A program made the translations under genes and the position numbers. Under the pieces are notes generated by a model. That model did no database searches. It was not told the DNA's origin and saw only the letters and a program-made list of their open reading frames with translations. Shown here piece after piece: positions 20,181 through 46,493 of a stretch of DNA of 64,000 nt (position 1 is its first letter; each line of letters opens with the position of its first letter). The stretch covers positions 1 through 64,000 of the forward strand of contig JALMLS010000523.1 of assembly GCA_038496445.1 (NCBI GenBank), written 5' to 3'. Source of the DNA: Trichosphaerium sp. ATCC 40318. Lineage: Eukaryota > Protista > Tubulinea.

Positions 20181-21657
20181 ATGGGTAACAAACAGCCCAA
20201 GCCGTCCAATACGCAATCTACAATAGCTACAATTGATTCTGCACTACTGAATATGCCTAACGAAGTGTTGGTGTGTATTTTGGTTCAATGTAAACCAAAT
20301 CAGCTTAGTACGACAAGTCTTGTCAGTAAACGCTTTCACGACCTCACACTCGCGGCTGCAAAACAAAACGTACGCTTCACAACCAAAAAAACCGACAATG
20401 AACGATTTGGTTTACAAAACCGGTAAAAATGTACTAACGTTGCTTCTAGAAGCTAAGATCGTATTCTCCACAGATGACAGCATTATCAGTTTGCTTTTTG
20501 GGAAGCGGTGGTAAAACACTTTTTACCCATATCTGTCTATTTAGTCGCTTATTATCTTGTGAAAACAGGGACAGGAAACAAGTCAGCTTTCGTTATACAA
20601 TTTTGCCATGATCATTTCGCACGTGATTTTTTTTTTATCTTTTTTGACTGATACAAAAACAATGCTTTAAGGGTGGTTCCACCCTTAAAAAGCCCGACAC
20701 TTGACTTGCGAGTTGTGACAATTGTGGATAGCACTAACAGTTTTTTCTAGAGACAGGAATATGATCCAACGATAGAAGACGTACGTTTAGTATTCCTTCT
20801 CGATTAGTTGCAAACATGTCATTAATACTTTTAGTCTTATCGGTATGTGATTGCACTTTGAGTTTCCTTTTGACGAAAACAAAGAAAAACATGGAAAGTG
20901 GATGGGATTGATGTGAATTTCGACATTTTAGATACAGCAGGACAAGAAGAGGTAGCGTAACTGGTTTCCATATGCTGATCAGCTTATAAACAAAATAATT
21001 GTTTTGTGGCGGTGTTGATTTTGTATCCTGTAGTATAGTTGTATGCGTGACCAATATATAAGACAATATGAGTGTGTTGTCATAGGATACTCTATTACTT
21101 CCCGTGGTTCTTTTCAAGATTGTGATAATCACTTCATCCCCGCAGTTCTTAGAATAAAAGAGAGAGGAGATTTTAGCAAAGTATGTCACTAGAATATTAT
21201 GTATGCCCTAATCTTGTTTTTTAGATACCAGCAGTATTCATTGGTAATAAAAAAGATCTAACTAATCAACGTGAGGTTTCATATGCTGAAGGAAAAGGTA
21301 AATCTTTCAATTTTGTTTTTTTTTTCTAATCAAACTGCACACTTTCTTATTCTTTCTTTGTATGATCATTATTCCACCTTTTTGTGTTGGAATTGAACTC
21401 TAACAGAATTGTGCAAAACTCATTTTTTGGCCCTTTGGGAATCTGCTGATTTAGTTTTTTCTTTTTTTTCTGATTATTTTGTTAAAGCATTGGCTGACAA
21501 GTACGGTGTTCCTTTTTTTGAAACCTCAGCAAAAACAAGAGAAAACGTTGAAGAGACTATGATAGCTTTAACAAGAGAGTATTGGACAAAGTTATGTTCA
21601 GGTGGTCAAACATCACCTAAAAAGAAAAAGAAGAAAAAGTGGAACAAAAAAAAATAA
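20181..21657 (+). CDS. F-box-Ras GTPase fusion, copy 1
   Basis: MGNK start; LLNMPNEVLVCIL F-box; GSGGTGNKS, EYDPTIEDSY, DTAGQEEY, GNKKD and ETSAK; polybasic end without CAAX. Confidence 0.88.
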
Positions 21658-21797
21658 AACAAGCACATCCGGCTGCCTCTATTGTATAAACTCCAATTGT
21701 TTGTAAAAAAACACGAAAGTACTCTTGGAAATAACTTAAACGCACTTTGCTTAATGCAGAATATAAGCACGTGATAAAAGTCGCAGTACATTTCATA

Positions 21798-23481
21798 ATG
21801 AATTCAAATTATCTACCTACCGTTTCTGTACAGCAAGCGCTGACATACTATGGTCACTACCACGGAGAAGCGTTTCAAAAGCTCACAGGAGAAAAATACG
21901 ACATAATCGTAAAACAACTTGAAAGAGTGTTAACAATTGCGAACGGATCCCTTTTACGACAACTTGACGATATTATATCAAAACAAACGGAGAATAATAA
22001 CGTTGTGGGCTTTGAGAAAGATAACGAACAATCCCCGAAAGAGAAGCAGCAACGGTACGCGATATACAAAGATAAAAAAAGAAAAATATCTCTTACCTCG
22101 CGACTGACAAATTAAGTTGTAGGACGCAAATTTCGATGTACGAGCCACCTAATCTTGTTGAGTTCCCTCCAGAGGTTCTTTCGCACATCTTTTGTTATAC
22201 AAGAGGACAAGATAGATTTTCTGTTGCTCAGTCTTGTCATTTGATGGCTGATATCATTCATCATGTTGTTGGATATGAAACTATTTATATCTCCAGTATT
22301 TCAGACATGTTAAAGATTAGACAGTACAAAGGCATACAAAACAAAACAATCGTTGGTATACGCAAGGACCTTGAGTGCCGCAAATTCAAACAGAGTACAC
22401 TTGATGACGACATTCTGGTAGAACTTGCAGGCGTTCGTCTTATTGATCTTTCTAATTGCGGGCAAATAACAGATAAAGGGATCAAGTCACTTGCAGGTGT
22501 TCATTCCATTAATCTTTAGATGAAGGGATCAAGTCACTCGCTGGCGTTCATTCCATTAATCTTTCTGATTCCCCATTAATAACAGATGAAGGGATCAAAT
22601 CACTCGCTGGTGTTCATACCATTAGCCTTCGTTACACTTCGGTAACAGACCAAGGTATCAAATATTTGAGAGGAGTACATGAAATCAACCTTACCAGCAC
22701 TTCAGTTACAGATGAAGGCATAATAGCATTGTCAGGAGTTCATACCATAAGTCTGCATCTTTGTAAGCTAATAACAGATGAAGGGATTAAAAGTCTTGCT
22801 GGTGTTCATACAATTAACCTTACTGATTGTGAACAAATAACAGATGAAGGGATCAAGTCACTCGCAGGTGTTCATTCCATTAATCTTTCTGGTTCTCCAT
22901 TAATAACAGATGAAGGGATCAAGTCACTCGCTGGTGTTCATGAAATCAATCTTTCTGGTTCTCCATTAATAACAGATGAAGGGATCAAATCACTCGCTGG
23001 TGTTCATACCATTAAGCTTAGTGAATGCAAACAAATAACAGATGACAGCATTGTTGAGCTTGCCGGTGTCCACACAATTGACCTCAGTTTTACTTCCGTA
23101 ACTGACAAAGGTCTTAAAGCACTCAAAGGCGTCTACAATATTGGCCTTTGTGGTTGTGAACACATAACAGATAACGGTATACAGGCATTGGCTGGAGTTC
23201 ATAAAATCTATCTGAACAATTGCATCCAAATTACTGATGAAGGAATCAAAGCGCTAAAAGGTGTACATACTATTTTCCTTACTAATTGTCAACAAGTGAC
23301 TGATGAAGGAATCAAAGTGCTAAAAGGTGTACACAAAATCTACCTGAACAATTGCACCCAAATTACTGATGAAGGAATCAAAGTGCTAATAGGTTTACAT
23401 ACTATTACCACTACTAATTGTCAAGTGACCTATGAAGGGATTAGAGCTCTTTCTGAAGTTCATACATTTGCTCTTTCATAG
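21798..23481 (+). pseudogene. F-box + LRR array (GVHxIxLxxCxxITDEGIKSLA repeats), frameshifted near 22517 unless rescued by splicing
   Basis: FPPEVLSHIF F-box; about 15 LRR units; one repeat is 19 nt shorter than its sisters; a decayed extra repeat with in-frame stops follows 23481. Confidence 0.75.
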
Positions 23482-24930
23482 TATAGTCAAGTGACAGGCA
23501 AAGGCATTTAATCGCTTCCTGGTGTTTCAAGATAAACATTTCTTTCTGTATTGTGACACTTTTGTTAGCCAATAAATAGTATTATTAAGTCTTTATTCGC
23601 GTTAAAAAAGGAAAACAAAGTTAGTTTATAAAACAGAAACACATGTAGATTTAACTTATACAAAACTTCGGAATTGTGCAAAATAAAGTACTCTCACAAC
23701 TTGTTGAAGATTAACCTCAAAACAACATCAACGTTCTTACAACCCGAACCACAACCTATTTTCGGATGACACTTGAAAACGAAGGTCATATTCTACAACT
23801 TGAAATGTTTGCTGATCTGTAAACCCAGTGTTTTCCTCACTCCGATTCTTCAAAATCCAGTAGAAAGTGCACCCTTCTTAACAACTTTGGCAACTGCATT
23901 AGGGTGAGCTACGCTCACTGAAACCAATTTAGTCACAAGGTATGTAACGCTCCAGACTCTTATAGTCCTTGACTTAACACTTAAATAAACATCTTTTATT
24001 CTAATTTCTCGGTTACGTTATCTCTAACCTTACAAGGTAAACAGTTTCTTATCATTTTTAGCACGTGCACTTGTTTACTTTTTGACTTACAATTCACAGG
24101 CAGCGTGCTGGCTTTTGATGTACAGCAATTTTAACGAAAACACCTCGCCACTTTCAATGAACTCAACCTTAGCTGTTAGAGTCTGTAAGCTACCGTTAAC
24201 TTTTTATTTAGCCCATTCATACTTTGCAATGACGTCTAATAAAACCGGGTTTGACACTGGTTTTTTGGCAACGCTCCATAACTTATTCAATAATACAGTT
24301 ATTGAGTAGGACAAGCGTATAATATCTCAATAGAGAGTTTTTAAATCTCAAAATAATTTTTTTCGAACTTTAGCACAGTACACATAGTAGCATCGGTTCT
24401 CGCGCGATTGTGCGTTAGGTAAGTATTACGAGACCTTACAGTAATAAAATAACTAAACAGCAACAAACACAACCGGTAACACGCAATCAACTAATTCTGG
24501 TTTTTAATAAGTAACTGTAAAACTGGTGAGAATTGTATCGTTTCTTGTCGTTGGAGCTATTTGTAGCGTCGTACGAAGTTTTGAAAAAAGACTAAACTTG
24601 ACGCTTCAAAGTGTCTAAAAAACCCTTGGCTAGCGTTACACGCCCGTATATGGGGTTTCAGATATTGTGATTGTATAATCTACCACGAAAACTGCCCTGT
24701 CGCTTGCCAGACGCATAAAAGCTGAGGTATACTATACTACCGAAATTACAGTAACTCTTGGGTGTATTTCATCACCAAATAAGTTTTATACCTATTTTAT
24801 TGCAATCCCCTTTCACATTCCTCCTGTTACTTACCTCTAATATCTCGCTAGTAGGTTGATTGTGGCTAAATATTACATAGCGGAGTTAATTTCTATTATA
24901 CTGAACGCAAAACGCGCATACTAATACGTG

Positions 24931-27900
24931 ATGACGGGTACTTGAGTTTTTGCCCATTTGTTTTAAAGCAATTACCAAATTATTGCCTGACGCTCTGTCG
25001 GTTTTAGACGGACCACCAAAGTGGGATAAATTACCTCCTGCAAGCGGTTCAGCATCAAATTCTAACAGGAGAAAGAAACCAAAAGAAAGTGTCAATTATG
25101 GAGCCCAACTTGAAGAAATTGTTGATTCAAAGGCAGAGGATCGCATTCAGGACTATGTAGATCATAGACCTATCGGAGACGGGTACGCGCTGGAATAATA
25201 AAAATAAAACTGATCGTACCACGTTTTTTTTCTTTTTTGGCCTTCATTCACGTGCACAAAGAAAACCAAAAAAAAAAATGAAGAGTACTAACAAAACTGG
25301 GTTTTTATCGTCCAGTCTTTTTTTTGACCGTCTGATAACGTGCGGTTAATATTAATAAATATCGTATAGTGCCTCAGGTGAAGTATTCTCGGCGAAGGAA
25401 GTGGCAACGGGTAAAACCGTAGCAATCAAAAAGATGCCTGTAAATAAGAGAAATTTGAAAATGCTTTTTACAGAATTGCAAATAATGAAGGTTACAAAGC
25501 ATGTTAATATTGTAACATACATGGATAGTTGGCTATTTGTAGATGATCTATCTGGTCGTAAACTTTGGGTTGTTATGGAGTTTATGGATAAAGGTTCTTT
25601 GACTGATATACTTGAGAAGTATGATGAAGGTGTACAGATGACAGAAGCGCAAATTGCACGAGTTTGTTTTGGGGCACGTGTTTTTTTTTTGAAAGTTTGA
25701 TTTTTTTTTCAATCTAGACAACCCTCTATGCTGTTGATGGTATTGAAAGCGACGATATCGCTATTATCTAGCTCATTAATCGCGTTTTACTTGATGCTTA
25801 TATCTTTTTTTGATATAGACGCTGAAGGCTCTTAAATTTTTACACAGCTCCAATAGGATACACAGAGATATAAAGAGCGATAATTTGTAAGATTTTCTTT
25901 TTGTAGTTTGCTCTTTTTGACTAATGGTCGTAGATTGTTGAATAGCCAGGGTGATATTAAATTAGGTACGCATTTTTACAGCGCGTTTCTATTTTTTTTG
26001 AGGCAGTATGGTCGCTAATACTTCGCGTAGCTGATTTTGGTTACGCGGCACAAAACGATTCTGATGAGCAAAAGCGTACTACGGTTGTTGGTACTCCTTA
26101 TTGGTACGTGCTTATTAAAAAGGTATTAGCGTGTTGCTAAAACAGAGAAAAATTAAGGATGTCCCCTGAGCTAATTAAAGGATTGAAATACGATAATAAG
26201 GTAGATGTATGGAGTCTGGGCATCATGGCGAGGGAGATGGCTGAAGGTAAAAAAAAAGAATGCCATTTTTTTTTTTGTAGATTCCCACAAATCTCACGCT
26301 AGTTCAATAGGAGAACCTCCATACATGGAATTCCCACCAATGAGAGCACTTTATTTGATAAATACAAAGGTTTGTGACTCTTCTTCACGTGAGAATTTTT
26401 AATTCAGTCGCTAATGCTGTGAACTAAAGGGTGTCCCTAATTTAAAAGAGCCTGACCGGTGGTCCCGCGAATTTAAGCATTTCATGCAAGTTTGTCTAGA
26501 ACGCGATGCTAAGAGACGTCCTACATCTGAACAAATGTTATCTGTGCGCTTTTTCTCCGTTCTCGTATCTTTGTCGCTCATTGTTCTGGTAGCATATTTT
26601 TTTGACTAAAGCAGCATCAAAGACACAGTTCCTAAAGGTTTATGGACCTCCAGAATTAAACGTAGAAGAAGAAGAGGCTCCACCAGCAGGTACGATAAAT
26701 GAGGCTTTTGTGCTCCATATCACTCAAATACGCACTCCAGGTCCTCCACCTAATCCACCAGGTCCTACAAAAACTATGCAGAACCGTCCACTGCCTAAAC
26801 GAGGTGGCGCACCAAAACAAAGACCATCGTATAATGCACCTAAAAAAGCGCCGTATAAGCGTCACGGCCCAAAACAAGCGGGTTATATGACAAAAACAAA
26901 GCCAAAGTATAGTTATGCAAAGCGAGCAAATGGAAAGAAAAATTACAACAGAGTATGCTAATAAGAGATATCGCATTATCAGCTAATATGGTTTAATAGG
27001 GACCTAAAAAAGCGTATTCCAACGATCCAAGGAATCGTAGACCATCACTAACTGCTAAGAGTCCAAAGAAACAGCCCTACAAAGTTGCCACAAGGCAACG
27101 TTCACCTTCAGCCGCTGAGCGACGTGTACGACTTAAAAACAAATACACATTAAGCCAACGTTAATCATTTGTTTTGTTAGGACTCGAATGCTGCTAGAGT
27201 TAAACCTACAGGGCGCCCTAGAGTTCAGTCTGCATCACTTCCTTCTCCACCAGTAACTACTGCACCTGCTCCACCTAGCACTCAGAACCGTCCAGTGTCT
27301 CCAAGGCGGCAAATGCCTAAAACGCCTAAGAAACCAAAATTAGAATGTTGGTCTGAGTTTAAGCCTGAGGAAGCTGGAGAAATTCATTTAGCTGTTGGAG
27401 ATGTCGCTGAAGTATCTAAAGAACAAGGAATGTGGTGTATGGGCAAAAATCTTAACTCTGGTACGTAGACTGCTTTAATTGTTTTTCTCCACAAAAAAAT
27501 TGTTTGTTTTCTCTGAATGTTAAGTATTTATCGTTTTTCCCTTTAGGTAAGGAAGGTTGGTTCCCTAGGAATTTTTGTATTCCATACGCAGATAAAGAAT
27601 CTGAAGAAACTATGGGTCATGTCCGTCTTCTTTCTACAGATGAAGCACAGAGAAGTAAACATGAGCTACTGTCTACATCCTCAACAAATGGATCACAGAC
27701 GTATACTCAAAGAGCTCCTGCTACGTATAGCACTCCTATTAATAATTCTGCATCTTCATCTTCTAGTGCTCCTGCTTCACCAAGGTACAATAGTCAACTA
27801 ACCAACTAAGAAACACGTTTATTTCGCTACTTCGTAAACTGTTTATTTATTTCTTTTGTCTGACTGTTACCCTTTAGAAGTTTCAAGGAGCGTGTTAATA

Positions 27901-28498
27901 AGTTTGGATCTACTGCTTCAAATCAAACACGTTATACTCCTACATCAACAAATGCTTCGTATGGTACTCCTGTTCAGCCTAAAACAACAACAAATGCATA
28001 TGGAAATCAACAGCAACAAGTTCAGCCAAAGGCTAATTATGGTCGTCCTATTAATCGGGCTTTGCCTGCTACAACATCACAGAATAAGAGATCAAAGAAT
28101 CGTGCAGTTAAAGTAGAGATCCAGATAGCAAACAACACAGAGTCCACATCGCCTACACCTGAGCCTAAAAAACAATCAACAAGCAAAAAAAAAGAAAGTA
28201 AATGGTGGAGATCTTCAAAGCGTAAATCGAAGCACAATAAGAAGAGACCTTTATCACCACCAAAGACAACTGTTCAAACACCTTTAACTAAATCACTACC
28301 ACAGGTACGTAAAGGAGACTCTCAGAGTTCGGAAAAACAAAAGCCCTGAAAACTCCAAGTTGTTTTTTTAAATCGTTTGTTTAGAACGTAACACGCACTG
28401 CACCTACACATATGCAGACAACTTCACATCCTGGACCAGGTCTTAGGTTATCACCAGAAGTGCTATTGTCTGCTTTGAAGCGATCAGGATCAAATTAA
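24931..28498 (+). CDS. PAK/STE20-family kinase with Pro/Lys-rich region and SH3 domain
   Basis: VAIKKM, LWVVMEFMDKGSL, HRDIKSDN, DFG and GTPYWMSPE; SH3 (EIHLAVGD...WC.G...GKEGWFPRNF). Confidence 0.88.
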
Positions 28499-28841
28499 AA
28501 AAAATACAAAAATCTGTACAGGAAGATTTTTTTGTAGATACAGTACAAAAAAAAAAGTATTGTGCTGTGTACGAAGATCGACTGTGTATTCTAAAAAAAA
28601 ACATACTTGTAACTCACCCCTTCCTTCTTTATCTTTATCCTACTCTCTATGCTCTTACCAGTAATACATTCTTTCAAGAATGTTCGGAATAACGAGCGAA
28701 ACTAGAAGCCTAAGCATTTTTTTTTGGTCTTTCGAAAAACGTTGATCACGTGTTTGAAGCGACTTATCTCGGAAGTAGTGCTGCTTAAAATACGCTTTAT
28801 ACTATTAATACTAGCAGCTCTTGGTATACTGGTTATCAACT

Positions 28842-29538
28842 ATGCATAAAGATAAGAAAGCACCAACAAACACGTGGCTAACAGCAACAAATCTTAAATA
28901 CGTTTTTTTTTGCCTATGTGTTGTTTTATTGTTTCTCAACACCAATGCTATAAGCGGTTTGAGAAAACAAATAAACGAAAAGAGAATTGTACCAGATACG
29001 CCTAAAGAAGATCTAAAACGAAAAATAAACGCTCTAGAGAGCAAACTGGATGTTTCTCTTGGGTCTATAAATGAAATCCAACAAGACACTCGTACAGCGA
29101 TGGATACAGCCAAACGCGCTATGCATATGGTGGAAGAGGTTCAAAGATCTATAAACAGTGTATGTTGCTTTCAAACTGCTTAAGGTTTTCTGCGCAGCGA
29201 GAAATGGTTCTTACTTCATTTCTTGTATCTGATACTGCAGCTTGTCATAACTCCGGTTAGGTGCTAAAGTTGAAGCCTCAAATACAACGAGTGTTGAATA
29301 TCTCCATGACAATGGCTAATTTAAAGAGCGTAAAGCAGATACAACAAGATTTGGTAATGTGCGTTGTTATCTTTTTTTTTTGTTTTTCCTAAGTTTCATT
29401 AATAAAGAGTTCACGAAAAATTGGATAGTATTATAAGTGGCAATGCGTGGGAAGGTACGAAATGATCTCGAATTGTTGTAATTTAATCATGTTATAGCAC
29501 CAGCTGCAACCGAAACTGGTGGAGCAGAAGAGAAATAA
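28842..29538 (+). CDS. Small type II membrane coiled-coil protein, unknown function
   Basis: N-terminal TM (YVFFCLCVVLLFL) followed by heptad-like helix; GT-AG introns join in frame to TAA at 29536. Confidence 0.55.
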
Positions 29539-29718
29539 TAGAAACCATTCTTGTAAATAAAAATTCTGAATTGATTACGACGTATTTTCCCTCTCTTTCA
29601 ACCCACCCGCTCTCAAAGGCGTTGTTCAAAAACAGGTTAACGAATGCAACTTTTTATACACCGGGAACTCACAGTGGCCTTTAGTTACAGAGGTAACAGT
29701 AATTTTTATAAATTATTA

Positions 29719-31042
29719 TTATTTAACATCTATCACATACAATTCGCTTTTCTTTTTTTCAGCAACAGCCGCATAAATTTTACCATTCTTATAGTGAAGA
29801 GCATAATAAGACTCTAACTTAGGGTTTGTACGAAGCTTTATAACCTCAGGCAAACGTCTCCTAGCAGCAATAAGCAAAACAAAAAAAACCAAAAAACAGA
29901 TTTCTTCTTCATTTTTCTCATTAATTTCTGACACTTGCTTTAAATATTCACGTGATATTTTAGAAAAAAATTCTTACCTAGTAAACCTTTTAAACAATCC
30001 ATCATGAGAAGCAAAATATATATTACTCTGTTCATCAATAACTAATCCCCAAACAAACTTTTCATGAACAACAACAGTTTCAACAATACCATTAAATATC
30101 CTACGAATACAAGTACTATCTGCAACATAAATATCATTACTATTTGGATCAATAGCAATAGAACTTGGAAAAGTAAATAAAGCATCTTCAATAGGACCAT
30201 CCAAAGTCTTTGTTATATCAGCACGTCCAGCAAGTACTCTAACATCACCTTTTCTTGATATAATATAAATACAATGATTCCAAAAATCAGTAGCTAATAT
30301 ATCACCATTATGATCAAAGCACATTCCATAAGGCCAGTTAAACTCTGCTTCATTATTACCTGAAACACAAGGACTGAATCCTTTCTTCTTAGGTGTACCA
30401 GCAAGTGTTCTTATAGTCCTTTCTCTTGTATTTATCTCACGTACTGTTCTATGACCTGTATCTGTAATGATTATATTATCGTTGTCATCAACAAGAACGG
30501 AATAAGGCCAACTCAACCCTGCACATTCTATTGGACCATCATTGTACTGAGAAAACGCTTTACTGTTCCCTTGTATCAGTTTTGTCGTTTCCCCAGTTTT
30601 TGGGTTTAGAAAGCTTACTAGAAACTTCTCTTGGTCAAGTATTACTAACTAAACAGCGTTTTAGCGTATTACCGCGCCTTTTGAATAAAAAAAACGTTAC
30701 GAATTTCTAACTAAATCGGTTGTAACATAAGTATACGTTTTAATGCGTACTCTACCATCTGCCATTGAAGCGACGCTTTTAACACCTTCAAATTGCGTAT
30801 TTGGCGTCAGATTTTTTGGTTTAAATACCTTTACGCGTATCTAGGTGTATTATTAACGCGTTTAGTGAGGGTATGGCGGGTTTTCTTATTAAACCGCGGA
30901 TAAAACTCACCTTTGCTATCTCAGAGTTATATAATACATACTTGCAGTAGCTACACCACAATTGAGCGTTAATAAGATCCTTTTGCGGGAGTAGTAACAA
31001 AACCTCCGTTATTATCTCGGGAGGTAGCTGTAAAATACTCAT
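29719..31042 (-). CDS. F-box + NHL-repeat beta-propeller protein
   Basis: ILQLPPEIITEVLLLL; NHL units WPYSVLVD..IIITDTGH, FNWPYGM and FTFPSSIAID..IYVAD. Confidence 0.85.
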
Positions 31043-31330
31043 TTTAACGTGAAAGGGCGTCAATGGATTACTGGCGTTTGTGTAAGTGGAGTCTAGTATT
31101 TTCGACGCTAGCCAAAAGTGCTCTCAGAACTACAACCTGTACGGCTTAGACTCACAAACAACATGCGAGAAATTCAGTCAAGCAATACTTAGCCTGCATG
31201 TTGGTAGTGTACCTTCGGTTTTCCTTCTTTTCTTTGAAGCAAAATAAGAGGATTTTTCTAAAAACGTGTCAAAGCGGAAATTTCAACTATTTCTCATATT
31301 GGCAGTACATACACGACTACCACGCCTAGT

Positions 31331-32487
31331 ATGAATCAACAACAAGTGTTTGACATTTTAGAACTACCTGTAGAGGTTATTGAGTTAATACTACTCAAAC
31401 TACCTGAAAGGAGCTTTATATCGTCTAGAATTCTTTGTAAGTACACGCAAGATATTATAGACGCTACGGTGGAGCATCAGGTACAAAATAAAAGCTAACG
31501 CCTGCAAAATCATGCTCATAGTTATTTAGACGCTGAAGAAGGTATTCTCGCTAACACCGTTATATCCACAAGTTGCTACAACCGATTTAGATATTGTAAC
31601 AGCTGGGGGCGCTTGCATTGACTACGAGAACAACGTACGCAATATTGTTAACTGTTTGTATTTTTTTTGCATCACGTTTTACTAACTTGCGTTCAGCTCC
31701 TTTTTCTCGAGTTAACTACGCGCGTTATTGTACGTTACAGCCCTGAAACTAAAGAATTTCGAGTTGTTGCTGGAAATGCAGCAGCTCGCGTATTTGATCC
31801 GGAATTGCGCTTCACGGACTTATATACCATTGCATGTCACGGAAAGGATATTTATATTACAGACACACGTTTCAATGGAGTACAAACGGCTTCAATTATA
31901 AAATTTGATGAACAAACTGGAGACGTTACAACACTTGCTCGACTGCCTTTCAGAGCTGTTCAAGGGATGTGTTTTTTGAAAGACAAGTGTTTTGTATCAT
32001 CTCCACGGACAAAGACATTATATGTATGTGATCTTAATGGTAAAACAGATCTAGTACACACCTACTCTTCACGTGCGTTAAAAAATAATTTTTATTTTTT
32101 TTCTTGTTTAGTGTTTGAAGTCTTATCGATCTAATCGCTTAATTAGGTAGTTGTTGTCCTCGTGAAATTGTTGTAGGAGGTCATGATGTGATGTATGCAA
32201 AGACTCAGAATGGTTTAGTAATTCTAGAACCAAATGGAGCTCAGACTTTGTTCGTCGTTGGAAAAATCCAGTTTTTTGATGTCAGTGTGAAAGGTGATGT
32301 TTATTTCATTAAACTTAAGGAGCCAGGGATATTCAAGTACTTCGCTAATTCAGGACATGTCACGAGGTTGAAGATACCTTCTCTATCCAATTTTGCATAC
32401 ATAAGACTGAAATGCTCAAGTAACAAGTTATACTTGTTCTGTAAACCAGTTAATAGAGTATGCAAAGTATTTGAGGTAGAATTGTAA
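31331..32487 (+). CDS. F-box + beta-propeller (NHL/SMP-30-like) protein, divergent from its neighbour
   Basis: ILELPVEVIELILLKLP F-box; RVVAG and DIYITDT propeller-type strands. Confidence 0.75.
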
Positions 32488-32887
32488 AAAAAGAACAGTA
32501 ATAAAAGATTAGAATTCTCGACCTACGTACAACTAAGGTTGCCAATAAACTCAACTGAGGAATGCCAATATATAAGTGCCTATTAGAGGCATATATACAG
32601 CGGCTATAGACGGTGTCTAATTTAGTTATCAAAGCACAAAGTTCAATCAAAGAGAAGCTGTGTACTGACTTCCGAAGAGAAAGCAAACTCGACAGGAGTA
32701 GCAATCTGTAGCATGCGTATTCAAACAACGCAACGTCTGCTCGTGCAAAAAACAAAGAAAAATAAGATGAAGAATTCCTGGATATGAAAGTTGCAACCTT
32801 GGTCGTTGCACGTAACAAAAACTAAGGCTATTGTGTTTGATACGTATCTACTTAGTTTATTTCTCTAAAAACCTCTTTGATATTTGC

Positions 32888-33367: not shown

Positions 33368-33631
33368 TGTGTGATGGGAATTATGACTAAAAACAGAAAG
33401 TAAGTTCCGGAAACGGAAGTAGCTTCTCTAGTTACGTCTGGGAGGCAAAAACGCGAAAAAAAACAACGGTTAACGTTTGAAAATGGTGTACGGTTAATAT
33501 TACAGTGCAGCGCGTAGATTTGGAATTACAATTCGCCACAGCCACTAAACAAAGCTTAATTTTGCTTGAAGACGCATCGCTACGGTTGTCTTTGTAATGT
33601 ACAGCTTAACGGTACTTATCTCATAACTTTG

Positions 33632-35158: not shown

Positions 35159-35968
35159 CTCTAAAAGCTGCAATATTTCTGAGGATGCAATATAGTAGTA
35201 TAAACACAATAGAATACAAATAAAATCACATGTACCGGCATCAAGCGGAACAGTAAATAACAAGAGTATGTATTTATTGGCATGGTATACACCGTAAAAT
35301 TTCGAAAAAAAAATTCGAACAAAAAGTTCAAAATCAGACAATATTTGTTCTCACCAATGCTGATATTGTGAACGAATGCCGGGTTCTTGTGCTCAGGAGC
35401 GATTCGTATAGCGTTTACCGGCTGAAAGCGAACTCCGCTTGTTAGTCTGTAATTTGTAATGAAAGGTAACATCACTTTTGTGTTTCGAAATTGTGATTTT
35501 TGACTATTGCTATTTACCGGATTTCGAAAACCTTTGAGCCGTTTTACTCACCTCAGAACCATCTTAAACTTCAATTGCTATTCTGACTATATAGTCGGGA
35601 TTCTATACTTGTAGTAAATAAACTATTTTGCTATTCGGTTATGCTGTGCCGACGAAAAGTACCGACAGTCATAGCAATTTTTTTCCAAACACTTATTCAA
35701 CAATTTCGGAAGTTCTGAAACTGTCCCAATAGCGATGACGACCAAAAGTCTTTTAAAGCAAAAAGTCTTTATTATTGGTTATTAAACTAGTGAGCATAGT
35801 TAAGACTAAACTGCCAGTAGTACACGGAAATTTTTTCTTCCGAAAACCTCGAATTCTGTTGTAAACGATTTGAGTGCACTCAATAGTTTACTTAATTTAT
35901 TTAAGTACACCTCACATTTTTACTCGTGGCTAGTGCGTGCATCACAGCGCATCTGGCCTACTATTACC

Positions 35969-38900
35969 ATGGCACATACGCTCTTTATCATTTTGGGTTT
36001 TATCATAGCAGTACAAGCCACTACCAGGTTCATAAGCCCACAAGGTAAATTAGTAATCTCATTTGGAAAAAAACCCCTCACTTTGCGTATTTTAAAGGTA
36101 CCGACTTTGGAGACTGCACAGACGCTGTAACACCTTGTCGTTCATTGAGATACACTCTCTTCAATGTAACAAAGACAGGTGATACCGTAAAGCTTGATTC
36201 AGGGATATACACAGGTACTAAGCGCACGTGATTTGACAACCAAAAATCGACATCTCACGAAAAATTATTCAGGTTTGGACAATTGGTTTCTGGATTGGCC
36301 AGATCCCCAAACTCTCCATGGTGTAAAGATTATAGGTACTCGAGGTCGGTATTCGTATTTTTGTTAAAACATCTTGTGTTTAGGCTCAAATACAGGCGAA
36401 ACGATACTAGATGGCGAAATGCAGGCGTATTTTTTTGTATTTCATTGTGACCTTGCTTTAACAGATCCACGCATTGGCGTTTTGGAAATATCGCATATTA
36501 AATTTACAAGAGCCACATGCATACCCCACGAAAGCGCGGTACGACGAAAATAGAAAATTTTTTGGTTTCCCAACACGTGATCACAGATTACATTAGTTTG
36601 TGCTTCGAAAAATGTTTGTAGTTTAGTTGAAATCGCCCCACAGGGAACTATAATTTTTATTTTACATTATATTCAATCAAAGTAGCAACATAACGATCTT
36701 GGCGCTGTGATATTCGCTAGAGATGGTTGTAGTATCAGTTTAAGGTACAAACAACGCCATTGTCTTATTTTCTGTTTTTCTTTAGTAACTTTACTTTTAA
36801 GCGACTGTACATTTGTTGATAACGTTTGTAACGAATCTTTAACAAACCGTACACCCAGACAAAGCATAATATCCTTGGAACAGTCACATATAAAATTACA
36901 AAGGTATCGAGTTTGTGTACTATGTTTAAACCGTTTTTTTAAAGTTTGTCAAAAATAGAGTGTCGTTCATTAACAACGAAAACGCTTTCAATGGTATTGT
37001 ACGTTCGAAAAAAGGTAGAATAGATATGGAAGATTGCTTATTCCAGAACAACACCGTTGGAGGTCAAGGTATGCGGGTTTTTTGTAGCTCATCGTAATCT
37101 TCTTTTTAATCTTTACATCATTTGTTAGGATCCATATGGGCTGAAGTAACTACTGTCGAGATGGATAACTGTAAGTTTATAAACAACACAGCACCACTAA
37201 CTGGTGGTTTGAGTACGGTCATTTTTCGCAATAAGTCTCTAACGTAACAAAACTGAAACCTCTGTTATAGGATGTTTGGGTACAGTTGTAGACTCCGCAA
37301 CAATACATCTACGAAATTCGGAGTTTATCAATTGCGAAAATGGTAAGCAGTCAATTGTATGATGTTCATTGTACTAACGCGTTACCTCGTAGCTGTTTGG
37401 CTAAAATTTTCCGATCATACGTTCATTGAGGGTTGCATGTTCAAGTGCGAGATCTATTTTTAGTCACATGATTAGAAAACACGTGATAATCTCTAATTGT
37501 TTGTTTAGGGACAATATAAAAAATGCTATTCTCGCAGTTGGGGTTCTTAACACTACTGTACACGATAGTACATTTGTCAATAATTATGGAGACCAAGGTG
37601 GTGCTATATACTTGTATCCTGGTGACAGAACTGATGAGTTGACTGTGAGTGATTCAATGTTTATGGATAACACAGCAAAATGGAATGTAAGTACCTTATT
37701 TTGTTCTATGTTTTTCTTCTTCTTGTATCTCCTTAACTTACCCCTCTCTTAAAGGGCGGATCCATTTATGTTGAAAACAATGTGAATATGTCAGTTATAA
37801 ACAGCGTATTTATTGGCAGTACCTGTTCAAATAATGGTGGCGCTATCAATATTCTCAACGGGAACAAAAAATATGTTTTTCGCAATTCAACTTTTTCAAA
37901 AGGAAAGGCAGGACATCAAGGAGGCGCTATTTCGTTTAGTACAGGCTTAACTTGGTCTCCAGCAGTAGTAGAAGTAGTAGACTGCCTGTTTGAAGACAAT
38001 GTAGTCGGTGAGATAACGGATATTAATATCAGGGGATCAGGAGGAGCTATCTTTGATAAGTGGTATTCAGTGGATTACATAAATAGCAGTTTTATAGGAA
38101 ATGAAGCTACTTTCGAAGGTGGAGCTATCAAGTCTTTTGGTAGTAACCAAATTATATCTGGATGCGTTTTCAAGGATAATACTTGTCCTTCTGGCGGAGG
38201 AATACACTTGAGAGGAAGTAACAATACTGTGAGATCATCTTTCTTCGAGTTCAATAAAGGTGGAGGTACGCGTATTGTTTTGTACTTGGCTCTATACTCA
38301 CTTTGTATCAAATAGCTATTTACGCTAATCCGAATGCTGATTTATTTGATAACACGTTTGTGCGTTCATCAACTTACGATCTTGATGGATTCTTTCCGTC
38401 TGCTACAAATGGTACCACAACAAAGTGAAATAAAGGATCTTGAATTCTTACTTTTTTTTCAAGGAAATAAGTTTGATGTACTTCATGTACCTACAACATC
38501 ATTCTGGGATATTGAAGCAGAATTAGAGACATCTTCATTGGTACTGGTTGGGGGAGTGATACGTTTCCTTCCTGGAGGCAGCATCACAATCACAAAGTCT
38601 TTTGAATTTTCAGTGGACGGTGTATTAACTGTACGTCTTTTAGATAAGAAATTTAGGATTGTCTTACTTATTCATTTACAGAGTAATGAGGGAAGCTTAG
38701 ATGAAATAACGAAAAGAGATACTCTCGATGAACCTGATATTATTCTTGGCTCAGAAAGTGTTAGTGAGTTCAATTTTCGTAGCTTGACTATTCACAATGT
38801 CACAATTGAAAATAGAGGTACCTGAGTTAGTTTCTTATTTTATTCCTATTACAAACAATTGTGTAGGGCAGCTTCTGATTACTAGAGAATTGATTCATAA

Positions 38901-41036
38901 TTTTCCATTCTCTCCAAAATATAGCCATATTTCGAATGTACCAGGATCCTCGTTAGTAGCTGGCTTTGGTGTTGATATTGGTGGATATGATTCTGTAATT
39001 AGTTTTACAAACTCATCGCTCGTTGTAAATGTACGTCGTTTCTAAAAAACAGCTTTTTGTGCCTGCTCGTCTCTCTTCGTTTCTGTACTCAATAGAATCA
39101 CTACCACCTACCCATACACAAAAGGGTGAACAGAACGAGTGATGAACTGAGTCAAGAATCCTTGTATGATTTTTTTCTTACTTATTGTTCATTAAGGGAC
39201 CAATTGAGATCAATACAACCACTCTTTTTAAGAATGGAAGTAAGGTAGTAATGTTTATCGAGGAGGCTTTTATCACATGGCACGTTAATCCAACAGTTGG
39301 TACACTACATATGAGTAAAGTACTTTCAACTAATTTTTTTCTTCAAGAGGGCAAGCTTCGTGTTGAAGTGATGCGTATTGTTGTTACTGTTGGAGAGACC
39401 TTTAAAGTAATGAACTTTACTAATAAGTCAAACATAAGCAACCTTGAAGACAAGATAGACCTTGTTTTAATAACAAGACGTGGTGAAGAGTTTACAAAGG
39501 TAACTTTTTCAGAAGGAGAAATAAAAGCACTTGTTATCGAAAAACCACGTGTTTTACGAGAATGGAGTTCATGGTCTGATATTTCAACTATCATAATTGT
39601 TATTCTTTGTGCTATTGGGATACTGGCAACATTCTCAATGGCTGCTATTGTTCTTGTCTTCTGGTACGTACTATGAGACTTCTCAGGTTAAAACAAAGCG
39701 ATTTAAACTGACTTTATATCAAGGAGAAAATCTACTATTCTGAGAGCAGCATCAAGAGAATTCTTGCTTGTAATTCTGTTTGGTCTTGCATTATCTTACG
39801 CTGGAGCAATTACATGGTAATCACGTGTTTTGATCGCCTACTGTTTTAGTTAGTTATCAAATAACACTTGATTTATGTTTTATATAGGATTGCACCGGTG
39901 ACATCGAATGCTCTGTGTGAATTAAAAGTTTGGATTCCTTTACTTGGATTTGTGATTTCACTTGCGTAAGTGCTTTTTCCCGACACGACAACTTTGGATC
40001 CACTTTGTGTTGTATTGATTCCAAGCTGTTTTTTTAATTTTTTTTTTAGGCCTATCATTTCCAAGACTTATCGTATTAAACGTATATTCAGTACCAAGAA
40101 CTTGAAGATACATCTCATCACTTTCATTGAGGTTGTTCAAATAACATTAGCTATTATTGTAATCCAATTCGTATCCACACAATCACCTTTTTTTTTTTTT
40201 TTCAACCTGTTGTTTAATCTCCTTGACGATATGAGGTAATACTTGTGATGTGGACTACAACATCTCGGAACAAAATAGAACGCGTGATTGATCCAGTTGA
40301 TGACGATTATGAACTTCCTCAATGTAAAAGCAAATTCGGTTCTGTGTTCGTAATCTTAACTGTTGTTTATGAGGCACGTGTTTTTCTCCTCACTGCATCC
40401 ATCAATTTAACGATAATTATTTAGGGAGGCGTTCTTGTTGTTGGCGCATACTTTGCTTTTGCCGTAAGGAATGTTCCAGTCATGTACAATGAATCAAAAT
40501 GGATGGCAGCTGTTATTTATAACGATCTTGTTTGGGGTGTTTTACTTTTAATCTTTGGATACACTGTAACTTCTCCCACTTCATATGCTACTTTTAGTAT
40601 TGTTGTATCTCTTGGTATATGGTTCATAACAACAAGTACGTCATAACAAAAAAGAAGCTTAAACCAAGCACGTGACACGTGTTGAGAACTTACAAAAACG
40701 TTTGTTTTTTTAGTTACTCTTGGCATGATGTTTCTACCAAAAGTGACTCGAATGATTCTTAGAAGAGAAATAGATGATGCGAGACCAAGTAGACCAAGCT
40801 CAACTCCATCAAAACCGAGAATTATGCTTACAGGAAAACGTGTCATAAAAACAAAATCTAAATCAGCTTCGTCTGACGGAGTTAAAGAAGGAGAAGAAGA
40901 GAATAATAGCTTGAAACAATTTGTTAAACAACTTGAAGAAAAAGTAGAAGTACTTGAGACTGAACTTGCAAAGTATCAAACTGATTCAAGTACAAGTATG
41001 AAGTTACATTCAAATGACTCAAAAAACTCCATATAA
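35969..41036 (+). CDS. Class C (GABA-B/Grl-like) 7TM receptor with a parallel beta-helix (GGAI/FxxN) ectodomain and C-terminal coiled coil
   Basis: Signal peptide; repeated FxxN...GGAI; 7tm_3 motifs ILRAAS, KTYRI, YNESK and FLPK. Confidence 0.85.
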
Positions 41037-41411
41037 ATGTATTTCTACCATCTTAAGTTGAATACTACCAACAATAAAATTAGAGCAATTAAATTTACAC
41101 TGGTTTGTTCGCAAGATGTATTGATTATTATTTTGTCTGCTTGGTATGTATCAAGCGGTATGTATCGCTTCACTCATAGTTAGAAGATTTGATTATCGTT
41201 TCAAAGACAGTCAAAACGGACCAATTGGAATTTCATTCATTTTCTTATTTGGCAAGGAGCTGAAACTACTTAACCTATCGGTGGACTTTTTGCCTGCCAG
41301 TATTCATTGTGTACCTTGGTAGCGTCAAATAATAATAACCATATTGCAGTATTTTACCTAGCATTGTACATTGCCGTGAAACTTACACAATAGTAAAAAC
41401 AAGTTGTTTTA

Positions 41412-44400
41412 TTAGAAGATACATGCAAATAGACTCAATGTTCCCAAAAATACTATTACTGCAACTTGTGATGCACCAGGGTACTGCGGAAAAGCAGAAG
41501 ATGTGCTATTAAATTCTGAAGGTTCAAGTGTTGTTACTGGAAGTGCAGTTGGTGCAGTAGGCATCATAGGAGAAACAGGTTGTTGAGGAGCTGTAGATGT
41601 TGGTGATGATGTCGTTGGGGTAGCTGACTGAGGTGATGGCGTAGTTGGGACAGCTGATTGAGGTGTTGCAGTTGTTGGCACTTCTGTCGGGGAAGTTGAA
41701 GTTGGAATTGCTGTCGGAGAATCTGTTGTTGGAGGCGGTATACCACATACATGGCTGAAAGGAGTCATTCCAGCTACAGGTTATTTAGATAAGCTTTATA
41801 GTAAACAAAACTAAACATACTTGAACTAAACAACCATCCACTAGGGTCAAATGAATAACCAGATCCAGTGTATACTGATGAAGTTCTGTTAACTACAAAA
41901 TCAGTGATATTTGGTGTTGTGTTGATGTATCCGAATACATCAATGAAATCTTCAAGTGGAACTGAAGTTGCACATTTTGAAACCGCTAGCACAACAGCAA
42001 AGTTGTAGCTCCTACTAATATCTAATATATCAGTTGTTACATTTGGCTCCTGCGATGATAAAGGGTCCCAAGTGTCTGCAACCACATAATTTTCCCCTGG
42101 ATTTAGTGTTCCTGACATTCTGAACTTTTCTTGGAATGTCGTTGGTGAAGCTAAAAAAACACAGTTGGCTTTGTAAAAGTAAAACAAGATGTGTACTCTC
42201 AGACAAGGAAATAATACTGTATTCACTTAAATCGATAGCTGAAGATCCACAGTTCGTCAGCTCAATATAATGTGGGTATCTGCGGCTAATTTCCGAAATA
42301 ATAAGCCCTTCCGCATCTAAGAAGAGTTTGTTAATCAGCACTTTGAAGTACTAAAGTCTACTACCTTCTACAAGGTTTCCTGAGCGTGTTGGAGCGTCTG
42401 TAGTAGGTGGAGCAGTAAGGGGCGGTAGTGGCTGGGCAGCAGGTTTCACTACAAATAAGTCAAATTCGGAAAAAGAATAACGGTTAGGCGCACAAACTTC
42501 ATCACATGATCCCCCTATAGAACGACCAGTAACGTATATGTTACTGATTGCTGTCCACGCTTCAGCCGCAAGTTGGAAAGATAATCTAATTGTCAATAGG
42601 TCCCCATTATCAGATGGAATATCAACATCAAATCTAGTCGCATGTGGCATCAAAGTTGTAAATGGTGAAAGTGAAGTACTATCCGGTTCTCCATCAAAGT
42701 CAGCGTCAAGACCCAAAAAGTTATTTGTTGTAGGCCCTGCAACGAATTGAAGTACAGTTGTAAAGTAACCTGCTCGCTTCACTGACCCAGAGCGGCTGTA
42801 TTCAATTTTAACAAAGTCACCGGTTGCATAGTGTCCGGCACCAGAACAATTTAGTTCTCGGCCTGCTGCAATATCAAGACTTAGACTAACACCAAATACT
42901 CCTGTACGAGCACGTGAATCGCTTAAATCTATATCCCTCCATTCTAAAGTACAATTAAGATGAACAATGCAGATTCCGGTTTTAATGCGTACCTATAGTT
43001 GGGTGATTGACAGCACTTTCGTTATCATCATAATCAGTATCCTCTCCAATAAGAAACTTGTTTGTGAATCCTGTCACTGATCTTATTTGTGTTGGAGGGT
43101 TAAAACCGTTCCAAAAGCCAGCGATTGGACCAGCATTTGCATCAGAAATACCAAAATAGTCATCGGAGTCTTCAGTTCCTTCTGAAGCGAATATCTGACC
43201 CAAAACAACAGTAAAAGAAGTATCATTCTTTTCAAAAGCCTCGACTAGAGGACAACGATCTACAACTGGAGGGTACTCTATAAAAACAACAAAGATAAGA
43301 ACTTGTAAAATACAAACAGTCATTACCGCAGACAACTGAAAAAGACTGAGAACATTGGCTAAACACCCAATAAGGTCCATCAATAGTAAGACATTCATCC
43401 GAGCTTCCGGGAGCTATTTATTTCTTGGTCAGTAAATTGTTTCTAACTTGCAACGTACTTGTCATAGGCAAGAAATTGACATAATCCACTGTAGAACCAT
43501 CACCCCATTCATAAGTTCCCATTACCAGCCTTAAATTTATCCACGCTTGTGTACCGTTCAAGAAATTCTCCAAAAAGCTAATACATAAAAGGAGTCATTG
43601 ATTGCAGAAACAGAAGGTAAATAGTGCTTACTCTTGAACTTGTTGGTTCAGTAGCACAGGTGGATTTCCACCTATACTCTCACAAACATCTACAGCAGCT
43701 AAACAAAAAGTCAGAACAATGGCTGTGTGAAACACTATGCGTACATGCTTGGGTAGTCTGGAAATCTAGTAAGACATACTTTGTTCCATTGAATGTAGCT
43801 TCAGATACTGTTTGATATCGTTTTTCTACAAACAACCATATTAAGAAAAAAAAAAGAAAAAAAACCACCAATACCACAAATGAACCCATTACTTTCTTGG
43901 CACTCAGTTACAAACCACTTCTCGTCTGGATTCATAGCAACACATCCCTCGGTTATATTTTCAAGACTAGGCTGTCCTACAGCCCAGTTTGTGTAAACAC
44001 CAATATCTAGAGGCGTTCCATCACTCCATTGAAAATTGTTTGCAACAGAAATGTTGTGCTTTAAGCCAACCCAGGTAGAAGCGGAAAGGAAAGTAAGCCT
44101 ATTACGCAAATACGAATTGATAAAATAACTATCAATGAAAGCTAAGCCATCAAAACGTTCACCCAGACAGGCAAATTGCGCCTATTAAGCCTTAGCAAGA
44201 ACCGACGATTCCTTTTTTTTTTTTTTTTTTTAGACTTGAACTTAGACGGTAATGGCCTTGCACTTACTTGCATAATCAGTCTGTGTTTCAATTTCGATGT
44301 AATCAACGCCGTTTATTCCAAAACTCGTCGCGCCTGTACCTGCATTGACTGCATATGCGTACACTGAATAAATATGCGTGTTAGGTGTTAAACAAAGAAC

Positions 44401-44571
44401 AATAAAGTTGAGTAGGTTTTTCGTTTTGTTTTTGTAAAGGCGACGTAAACCTCGACATCCGCGTAGCGAGCTTGTCCGTGAGCGATTTAAGTCACAATAG
44501 CGAAGTTGAAATGTTTAATTGTTTTGTCCGGCCGTTTACCTGCAATGATATACAAGAGCGTAAAACTTCAT
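41412..44571 (-). CDS. Surface glycoprotein: two C-type lectin domains, lamin-tail-like domain, S/T/P stalk, hydrophobic (GPI-like) tail
   Basis: WVGL..FQWSDG..YTNW..GQP..CV..W..C (CTLD); LIISEI..YIELTNCGSSAIDLS (LTD-like); PTT-rich stalk. Apparent +1 shift in the signal peptide. Confidence 0.75.
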
Positions 44572-45139
44572 TTAACAATAACTTGAAGAGGTGCTTTTGA
44601 GTGATATAATTAGAAATAATGCCACTATCGGCAAAAAAAGGTTAAAAGTTCCGAAAACTACAAAACAAAATGGTGGAAAGTCAAGCAGCCACAACATGAT
44701 AGGGAAGGTAAACAAACTCAAAAACATCAGGATACCACAGAAAACTACAAAACATTAAACTATAGGCCAGAGCTTTGCGGCCACGGACTCTCTTTGCACT
44801 CACACTATTTTCTGTAAGTGTTACCAACTGTTGAACGACACAACCGACAAGAAAAGTTACGCAGTACAGTGTAAAACTACACCTGTTTTCACGTCATTCC
44901 ACTAAACGTTTCCACTTCTGTACTACCTTTAAATACGTTGATCTGGAGTTACGGTTAAGCAGAACGTTGCCAAGGCTGTAAGTTAAAGCTGAAAATAACT
45001 TGCAACAATAAACTACAAGTTTTTCAGCTTTGGAAATATGGAGGTGCGTTCAAGTGTATAAAGGCCTTAAGATGCTGTATAGAAAACTTAAGTACACGAA
45101 ATCCAGAATGCTATTGATTTCAGCTACAACGAGAGTATT

Positions 45140-46493
45140 TTATTTTTTGGCATTTTTTTTCTTCTTCTTTTTTTTTTTGGATGTTGCTTGTTTACTACAC
45201 TTCTTTTTCCAATACTCTCGTGTCAAGCATATCATAGTCTCTTCAATGTTTTCTCTTGTTTTTGCTGAGGTTTCGAAAAAGGGAATGCCATACTTATCAG
45301 CCAATGCTAGTGAAAAAGAATCAAAAAGGAAAGAAGTTGTTACACCAAAGATTTTACCTTTTCCTTCAGCACATGTAACCTCACGTTGATTATCAAGATC
45401 TTTTTTATTGCCAATTAACACTGCTGGTATCTAATAATATTAGGGACACATACATCACTCATGAACACTTAAAATTTAAGTTAATGGTAACTACTGTTGG
45501 ATACTTACTGAGCTAAAATCTTTTTTGTTTTTGCAACGAAGAACAGAAGGAAAAAAATGATTTATGCACTCTCCCAGAGAACAATGTGAATTAATAGCGT
45601 ATCCAATAACAAAACAATCATTACTTCTAATATATTGATCACGCATGACACTGTACTAAAAGAACAGTAAACAGTCAAGCCAAAAAAAACAAAGCAAACT
45701 GATGCTAGAAACAACTCAACTGAGTCCTTTGGCTAAGCAGTTGGTTTGACTACCTAATGTAACTTAAGAAAAAATACCTCTTCTTGTCCTGCTGTATCCA
45801 GCATATAAAAAGTCACAGGCACACCATCTACTTTCCATACTTTGCTATTGGCTGTCAAAATAAAGATCTTGATTAAACAACACACCAGTATGACTAAAAC
45901 AAAAGTAAGGTATTTGAAAACATGCAATACAAAAAGCAGATATTATAAAGGGTGCAGTCTCAACAAACACCAAAAAAAAAAAGTTCATTTGACGTACATC
46001 CTCTATTGTTGGATCATACTCCTCAACCTTAATAAAGTGTTAATCATTAGTAATGGGTTACAATAATTATCAAAAATCACGTGCGAAGTGGTTGTTTGAA
46101 AATTGTATTATGAACGCTGACTTGTTTCCTGTCCCTGTTCAAATGTTATTAGCTAAAAAAGAGCTTGGTTTTCTTATTGTCGTTTACCACCGCTTCCCAA
46201 AAAGCAAACTTTCAAAGTTGATTTCTGAGGAGAATATACTTGCAGCTTCTTGGAGTATTTTTGCATTAGATTAGTGTACAAAGCGTTCTTTTTATTGTAT
46301 TGGATTTAAAGCATACCTTACGCTTTGCAGCAACGTGAGTGAGGTCGTTGAAGTGTTTACTGACAAGCATCGTGGTACTAAGCTGATTTGGTGTACACTG
46401 AGCTAAAATACACACCAACACTTCGTTAGGCATGTTTAGTAATGCAGAATCTGTTTGATACTGCTTGATGGTCTTTTGTTGTTTATTACCCAT
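45140..46493 (-). CDS. F-box-Ras GTPase fusion, copy 2
   Basis: Same exon structure as copy 1; GSGGTGNKS, HFVEEYDPTIEDSY, DTAGQEEY, GNKKD and ETSAK; poly-K end without CAAX. Confidence 0.88.

Follow-up and report, generated by a model that had tools for sequence, protein, structure and literature searches.

What can a Ras domain still do once its phosphate-binding loop (P-loop) has gained a residue and an F-box has been placed in front of it? The question is raised by two genes in the first 64,000 nucleotides (hereafter the window) of contig JALMLS010000523.1 from the marine protist Trichosphaerium sp. ATCC 40318, which an earlier note had described as paralogues with an MGNK start, an F-box and a full Ras domain, a description borne out here by nine-exon gene models and Pfam. 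Few motifs in biology are as conserved as the Walker A spacing GxxxxGK[S/T], and both genes depart from it, reading the nine residues GSGGTGNKS with an extra Asn before the Lys. On sequence comparison, both genes belong to a family of 11 F-box-Ras fusions restricted to this lineage, and the extra Asn is real, derived and selected. We give roughly even odds to a reading in which the proteins act as substrate receptors of an SCF (Skp1-Cul1-Rbx1) ubiquitin ligase, using a Ras domain whose nucleotide pocket is altered but probably functional. That F-boxes occur fused to small GTPases suggests a direct coupling of GTPase switches to ubiquitin ligases in some protists; we know of no substrate for any protist F-box-GTPase fusion. 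The present family makes a good model, since its classical Ras descent and Ras-identical switches allow candidate partners to be guessed.

The window DNA is eukaryotic, with ∼36% G+C and short introns. Copy 1 occupies 20181–21657 on the + strand and encodes 256 amino acids, and copy 2 occupies 46493–45140 on the − strand and encodes 251. Assembled from the genomic letters, each gene gives a clean open reading frame (ORF) across nine exons, with intron positions identical between the two, and the proteins share 73% identity. Both start with MGNKQ, and both spliced proteins read FLGSGGTGNKSAF, EYDPTIEDSY, DTAGQEE, GNKKD and ETSAK, in agreement with the earlier claim that the EYDPTIEDSY, DTAGQ, NKxD and SAK motifs are intact. 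Of the nucleotide-binding and catalytic motifs of the window copies, G1 alone is altered. The altered loop is divided between two exons. In copy 1, exon 2 (20474–20510, +) encodes MTALSVCFLGSG(G), comprising β1 and the first half of the P-loop, and exon 3 (20569–20618, +) encodes (G)TGNKSAFVIQFCHDHF, comprising the second half, with the extra Asn (codon AAC at 20577–20579), and helix α1. The corresponding exons of copy 2, placed by comparison, encode KSTLKVCFLGSG(G) (46188–46224, −) and (G)TGNKSAFIIQFSNNHF (46085–46134, −), the latter again with the extra Asn. Exon 3 ends at a GC donor in both genes.

To place the two genes in context, the 70.3-Mb assembly was queried with exon 1 and with exon 9. 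This identified 10 loci in which an MGNK-F-box exon is followed by Ras exons, and an eleventh, C134, with a diverged F-box; the earlier note was thus right about both genes but understated the extent of the family. Copies 1 and 2, C65 and C122 all carry GSGGTGNKS, with every other G motif intact. In C152 the loop reads GSEGTGSKS, with switches I and II decayed and G4 and G5 intact, and in C88 it reads GSNGNGNKS, with both switches decayed, G5 altered to ETSGK and G4 intact. C39 and C488 have GSGGTYKS and decayed switches I and II, C76 has a P-loop without the glycine frame together with GYKDD and EASSK, and C67 is missing exon 3, its other G motifs being decayed. C134 (C134:78617–81802; L023/L050) has the canonical loop GVGGAGKS, the MGNK start, all G motifs intact, no poly-Lys tail and the same nine-exon structure, and so offers a natural control for any assay of the insertion. 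One genome therefore holds a graded series, from a canonical P-loop, through an Asn-extended loop with the other motifs intact, to full decay. C488 (L003) and C39 (L002) are near-identical copies of one decayed paralogue; C488 has an in-frame TGA at the micro-exon junction and could be either a haplotig or a young pseudogene.

Transcript evidence that the two domains are joined comes from C67. The protein P0001, a complete ORF from an MMETSP transcript, maps exon by exon and without mismatch to this locus, and shows that a single mRNA encodes both the F-box and the Ras-like part; for P0001 itself the records list no encoding contig. It matches both Pfam F-box and Pfam Ras, and the 60 best Protein Data Bank matches listed for it are, without exception, chains of Ras, Rap, M-Ras and related small GTPases. 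The exon-1 F-box profile, run against 1.84 billion representative sequences, found only P0001 and nothing outside this organism, and word-based protein searches with P0001 and with exon 1 gave no further relatives.

We accept GSGGTGNKS as the probable product of both window genes on comparison rather than on reads. The positions of the P-loop donor (G|gta..., which in copy 1 exon 2 is the family-conserved G|gtaaaa) and of the acceptor are the same in all nine modelled paralogues, and in C134 these same sites give the canonical GVGGAGKS. At the P-loop junction, other splice sites that keep the frame are absent from C122, C152 and C88. Copies 1 and 2 have alternatives that are not conserved, a donor 3 nt upstream, giving GSGTGNKS, and an acceptor 6 nt downstream, giving GSGGNKS; both products are non-canonical and neither is GxxxxGKS. 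AAC and AAG TCA are contiguous within exon 3, which leaves no GT/GC-AG splice able to yield GxxxxGKS, and a splice restoring it, sought in both copies, was not found. An AT-AC (U12) intron at the P-loop was also considered and rejected, as there is no suitable upstream exon end. Genomic letters and paralogue comparison thus uphold the extra Asn before the Lys in both copies. The view that a sequencing error is unlikely also stands, the insertion occurring at independent loci on different contigs with AAC and AAT codons.

The RNA comes from one public run, X1, whose short spliced contigs are 100% identical to the window. Four joints of copy 1 are confirmed: exon 3 to exon 4 across the GC-AG intron, exon 4 through the micro-exon to exon 6 [TCTTATC(G)], exon 6 to exon 7, and exon 7 to exon 8. 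RNA confirmation of the junctions, which the earlier note had proposed, is therefore partial: these four are seen, but the P-loop junction, with exon 2, lies outside contig coverage.

A maximum likelihood tree of the family was drawn midpoint-rooted and interpreted with a pair of single-exon canonical Ras genes as the outgroup. C134, C88 and the C65/C122 pair fall near its base. Branch lengths are 0.06–0.18 for intact paralogues and 0.48–1.43 for decayed ones, which appear as sisters of intact ones. Ratios of nonsynonymous to synonymous divergence (dN/dS) were computed by the Nei-Gojobori method. Between copies 1 and 2, the comparison suggested earlier, dN is 0.20 and dS 0.75, and the ratio of 0.27 indicates purifying selection. 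Ras-domain ratios among intact paralogues are 0.11–0.25, with dS often saturated, and the F-box gives 0.12–0.15 between intact copies and C39 and C76. All four intact genes share the same nine P-loop residues, although six of the nine codons differ synonymously (the Asn being AAC or AAT), which makes the insertion a real, old and maintained feature.

The joint conservation of K16/S17, T35, D57/G60/Q61, NKxD and SAK argues that nucleotide is still bound. In C39, C76 and C67, by comparison, several G motifs have decayed at once. Together, these patterns point to a nucleotide pocket in the window copies that is altered but working. The earlier note had spoken of a broken P-loop and a pseudo-Ras; this description is not supported for the four GSGGTGNKS paralogues, which keep K16/S17, T35, DTAGQ, NKxD and SAK and are under strong constraint, with Ras-domain dN/dS of 0.11–0.25. 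A one-residue insertion beside the Walker A Lys, held under purifying selection, merits structure determination and a nucleotide-binding assay.

The remainder of the Ras domain is close to classical Ras. G2 (with T35 in YDPTIEDSY), G3 (DTAGQ), G4 (NKxD) and G5 (SAK) are present in both window copies, C65, C122 and C134; switch I (YDPTIEDSY) and switch II (DTAGQEEYS.MRDQY) are identical or nearly identical to those of classical Ras, and the domain is 42%–43% identical to canonical Ras of the same genome. In copy 1, the RNA joins the 3′ end of exon 3, GATCATTTC, to position 20751, the start of exon 4 (20751–20780, +; RQEYDPTIED, switch I), which is itself covered by an RNA contig. Exon 5 (20835–20842, +) is an 8-nt micro-exon, TCTTATCG, encoding S, Y and two bases of R, and the RNA shows TCTTATC between the sides of the joint 20780>20884. 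Exon 6 (20885–20951, +; KTWKVDGIDVNFDILDTAGQEE, G3) is within an RNA contig. Exon 7 (21034–21180, +), with the end of switch II, β4 and α3, is bounded by RNA joints 20949>21032 and 21180>21225, and matches Pfam Ras (PF00071) at 24.8 bits (E 1.8e-5), above the cut-off of 21.6. Exon 8 (21225–21297, +; IPAVFIGNKKDL..., G4) again lies in an RNA contig, and exon 9 (21488–21657, +) encodes ETSAK (G5), a conserved Cys and the poly-Lys tail up to the stop, with an RNA contig over 21514–21684.

Copy 2 follows the same plan on the − strand. Its gene model places VEEYDPTIED in exon 4 (45998–46027), ...MLDTAGQEE in exon 6 (45778–45844), GNKKDL (G4) in exon 8 (45358–45430), and ETSAK, the poly-Lys tail and the stop in exon 9 (45140–45306). 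Its micro-exon 5 (45886–45893), TCATACTG, is homologous to the RNA-confirmed one of copy 1, and its exon 7 (45509–45655) scores 18.5 bits against Pfam Ras (E 0.0016), below the cut-off. In both genes the micro-exon supplies the SY of EYDPTIEDSY, and intron 3 (20619–20750; 46084–46028) is of the GC-AG type with donor TTC|gcacgt; the donor TTC|GCACGTGA is kept in six family members. The GC-AG intron and the micro-exon are likely to be overlooked by gene predictors.

Both ends of the proteins bear on membrane attachment. The C-terminal ends, KKKKKKKWNKKK in copy 1 and KKKKKKKKNAKK in copy 2, are poly-Lys tails without a CAAX prenylation box, as previously noted. The genome has dozens of canonical Ras genes, every one read having GxxxxGKS, and these end in CKLV; the two read as full ORFs, C71 and C2, have a polybasic stretch followed by CAAX (e.g., ...KKKKRRKPSIKKCKLV). 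The poly-Lys tail of the fusions thus represents a K-Ras-type hypervariable region minus the CAAX. A conserved Cys (REYW.K.C) lies 3–10 residues upstream of the poly-Lys tract, at 21596–21604 in copy 1 and 45198–45206 in copy 2, and recurs at the same position in eight of the 10 poly-Lys paralogues. Next to a polybasic tail, it could be a putative S-acylation site replacing the lost CAAX. At the other end, Gly2 and MGNK are invariant in the family. Myristoylation, proposed in the earlier note, is hence suggested by the invariant Gly2, but both window copies fail the PROSITE pattern PS00008, G-{EDRKHPFYW}-x(2)-[STAGCN]-{P}, which only C65 and C88 fit. Its fifth position, the sixth residue of the protein, is Pro in copy 1 and Gln in copy 2.

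The F-box is genuine in both window copies. Exon 1 of copy 1 (20181–20369, +; RNA contig over 20161–20330) encodes the MGNK N terminus and a complete F-box in 63 amino acids and ends in phase 0; exon 1 of copy 2 (46317–46493, −) encodes the same elements in 59. Their Pfam F-box (PF00646) scores are 29.0 bits (E 9e-7) and 29.7 bits (E 5e-7), respectively, with a cut-off of 20.5. This cut-off is exceeded in seven of the nine family exon-1 peptides scanned and also in P0001, with C152 (19.0 bits) and C134 (18.3 bits) just below it. The Skp1 of the same organism is P0023, an MMETSP transcript protein of 171 amino acids that matches three exons on contig C137; its next-best database matches are 41%–54% identical. 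A complex model of the 63-residue copy 1 peptide with this Skp1 reaches an ipSAE of 0.72 (0.71–0.73 over three runs), compared with 0.02 for the best control; the mark used for this score is attained in 51 of 78 solved complexes and in two of 108 mismatched pairs. The runs have no less than 96% of contacts in common, the partner predicted local distance difference test (pLDDT) value is 70, and the interface places F-box residues 19–53 against the C-terminal helices of Skp1. The model lends in silico support to docking of the exon-1 F-box on Skp1, and with it the earlier proposal of Skp1 recruitment.

The GTPase-like domain of animal FBXO4 is highly diverged and is not known to have recognisable G motifs. 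FBXO4 (Fbx4) is an F-box protein that uses this atypical small-GTPase domain as substrate receptor (review PMC7086354), and the likeness to the window genes lies in an F-box protein with a GTPase fold as its receptor domain. The Ras domain here differs in its 42%–43% identity to same-genome Ras and its intact G2–G5, which suggests that the fusion arose independently of FBXO4 and is much younger. In an ESM Atlas feature search with P0001, FBXO4 clusters were nearest (0.81–0.83), below the 0.9 level, and serve as a lead only.

A close architectural parallel is in Naegleria, where Ras-superfamily G domains (Rab-like, Rho, Ran and G-alpha) carry the F-box more often than any other additional domain, in families that undergo birth-and-death evolution and for which “GTPase-dependent ubiquitination” has been proposed (Herman et al., 2021, PMC8296547, Additional file 4). 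An N-terminal F-box upstream of the G domain and lineage-specific expansion are common to both organisms, but in Naegleria the Ras family proper is listed with BTB only, and a P-loop insertion is not described (PMC8296547). MGNKQPS, an occurrence of the N-terminal motif of the present family, lies just before the F-box region of a curated Naegleria F-box-Rab-like protein (PMC8296547, supplementary file 10); this match may be a chance one, may result from convergence on a signal for acylation, or may point to remote homology. TbFRP of Euglenozoa, a FYVE-F-box-GTPase protein, likewise has the F-box directly upstream of a Ras-like GTPase domain, but is a single conserved orthologue rather than an expanded family (PMC3593210). 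RhoBTB and the BTB- or F-box-ARF fusions also join a small GTPase domain to a cullin-ligase adaptor domain (PMC8358228); they differ in having BTB as the adaptor, which docks Cul3, or an ARF-family G domain, and hence in domain order and GTPase family. The architecture, whose prior characterisation the earlier note had named as grounds for refutation, is thus already described in Naegleria, TbFRP and FBXO4; as a class it is not new, and the conserved loop insertion alone is unusual. We found no literature description of a version with the Ras family proper, of a lengthened Walker A motif under purifying selection, or of a canonical-extended-decayed series in one genome.

With K-Ras4B-type Ras, the window proteins have in common switches I and II, NKxD, SAK and a polybasic C-terminal region. 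They differ from classical Ras in the extra residue next to Lys16, fixed in the germ line and under purifying selection, in the absence of CAAX and in the added F-box. To our knowledge, as far as literature searches and general knowledge go, a nine-residue P-loop of this type has not been described for the Ras superfamily. The K-Ras variants G10_A11insG and A11_G12insGA have a lengthened P-loop and still accumulate as Ras-GTP and transform cells (PMC4049792). As a precedent for a working long P-loop these are only indicative, because the insertion here aligns closer to Lys16.

We propose that the family arose when a self-contained exon-1 module, carrying MGNK and the F-box and ending in phase 0, was placed ahead of what had been exon 1 of a gene resembling K-Ras. 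In copy 1, exon 2 starts with a Met aligned to the Ras initiator Met, and so fits the capture of an F-box exon before a Ras gene. The fusions would then have retained the polybasic tail and lost CAAX. In the proposed mechanism, the first two steps of which have in silico support, the F-box would dock on Skp1 and bring the protein into an SCF ligase as substrate receptor, and the Ras domain would bind the usual Ras partners, namely effectors, guanine nucleotide exchange factors (GEFs) and GTPase-activating proteins, which are very numerous in this genome. Ubiquitination of the bound partners, or of the receptor itself, would take place at membranes, to which the protein would be drawn by its polybasic tail, the conserved Cys nearby and possibly a myristate at the N terminus. 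The most likely effect of GSGGTGNKS is a change in nucleotide handling and not a loss of binding, for example toward a state that is locked or independent of regulators, in which case the receptor would act constitutively or be gated in another way. Paralogues without G motifs are probably pure binding scaffolds, like the GTPase-like domain of FBXO4. A more specific version, in which a working nine-residue P-loop binds guanine nucleotide in a locked, regulator-free manner and the SCF receptors ubiquitinate Ras effectors or regulators by nucleotide state or constitutively, is in our estimate improbable; if true, it would tie Ras signalling directly to protein degradation. On this version the extra Asn may derive from a duplicated Lys16 codon (AAC-AAG).

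Several points weigh against a substrate receptor with a working pocket. No X1 contig spans the exon 1–2 or exon 2–3 joints of the window genes, the contigs stopping 9 nt before exon 4. The Asn lies next to Lys16, whereas the K-Ras insertions, at 10–12, are much farther from the residues that contact phosphate, and loss of nucleotide binding in the window copies is possible. Skp1 binding of copy 1 is an in silico prediction, and the score of the complex may stem from the model having learned the many Skp1-F-box structures already solved. AlphaFold2, run on the single sequence of P0001, gave a poor model, with a mean pLDDT of 40.4. Finally, the F-box of TbFRP has been linked to turnover of the protein itself and not to substrate capture (PMC3593210).

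If the insertion instead destroys phosphate binding, the empty domain could serve as bait, clamping RasGEFs or other Ras binders for destruction by SCF or acting as a decoy for pathogen factors, as the earlier note had imagined. Nucleotide-free Ras mutants of the G15A (G15) type bind GEFs tightly, and at least 133 RasGEF exon matches are present in the genome. The non-canonical Walker A spacing of 10 of the 11 family members fits such a bait, as does the loss of G2–G5 or of exon 3 in several paralogues, which indicates that the fold can persist without catalysis. Birth-and-death turnover of the family also accords with it, within a hugely expanded F-box superfamily (1398 first-look candidates; all 150 that were scored exceed the Pfam cut-off). 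The four GSGGTGNKS paralogues, however, strictly keep NKxD, SAK, S17, T35, D57, G60 and Q61 across saturated dS, a pattern difficult to square with an empty pocket, and are unlike the decayed paralogues, which show relaxation. There is no sign of gene-wide positive selection (dN/dS 0.15–0.39), and nothing in the analysis bears on pathogens. We therefore consider a nucleotide-free bait unlikely.

Alternatively, by analogy with TbFRP, the proteins might be signalling Ras GTPases to which the F-box gives a short life through auto-ubiquitination by SCF, or which it tethers to Skp1. TbFRP is rapidly processed, and its F-box was linked by the authors to turnover (PMC3593210); the Ras-identical switch regions and the retained membrane-targeting features of the window copies would suit a signalling protein. 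Half of the family, however, has lost the switch and nucleotide motifs while keeping the F-box (dN/dS 0.12–0.15), which a receptor or scaffold explains better, and we regard a self-destructing switch as doubtful. That the genes are mis-assembled, mis-spliced or dead is scarcely credible: the P-loop junction is outside RNA coverage and the near-identical copy C488 has its in-frame stop at the micro-exon junction, but frames are open across nine exons in both genes, four junctions are confirmed by RNA, paralogue C67 has a full-length transcript protein, selection is purifying, and the same feature recurs at independent loci on different contigs.

The family sits in a genome rich in Ras genes. 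A tandem cluster at C181:104000–121000 (L026, L032–L034, L040 and L043) holds at least eight canonical Ras genes, with P-loops GDGGVGKS and GSIGVGKS, and further Ras genes lie on C492, C379 and C271; the Ras family is therefore strongly expanded.

Copy 1 is flanked by two ORFs that look like further parts of the F-box/leucine-rich repeat (LRR) superfamily. One, at 18726–19787 (+, 353 amino acids), shows weak similarity to an F-box (E 2.6e-4, under the cut-off); the other, at 22666–23481 (+, 271 amino acids), carries LRR_6 repeats of the RNI type (E 1.4e-30). Further ORFs that lie between the two copies or outside them, at 29974–30516 (−), 31667–32134 (+), 37782–38315 (+) and 54221–54760 (−), show NHL repeats, a weak Kelch match, a Chlamydia-PMP-type repeat and a weak talin-rod-like match, and appear unrelated to the fusion genes.

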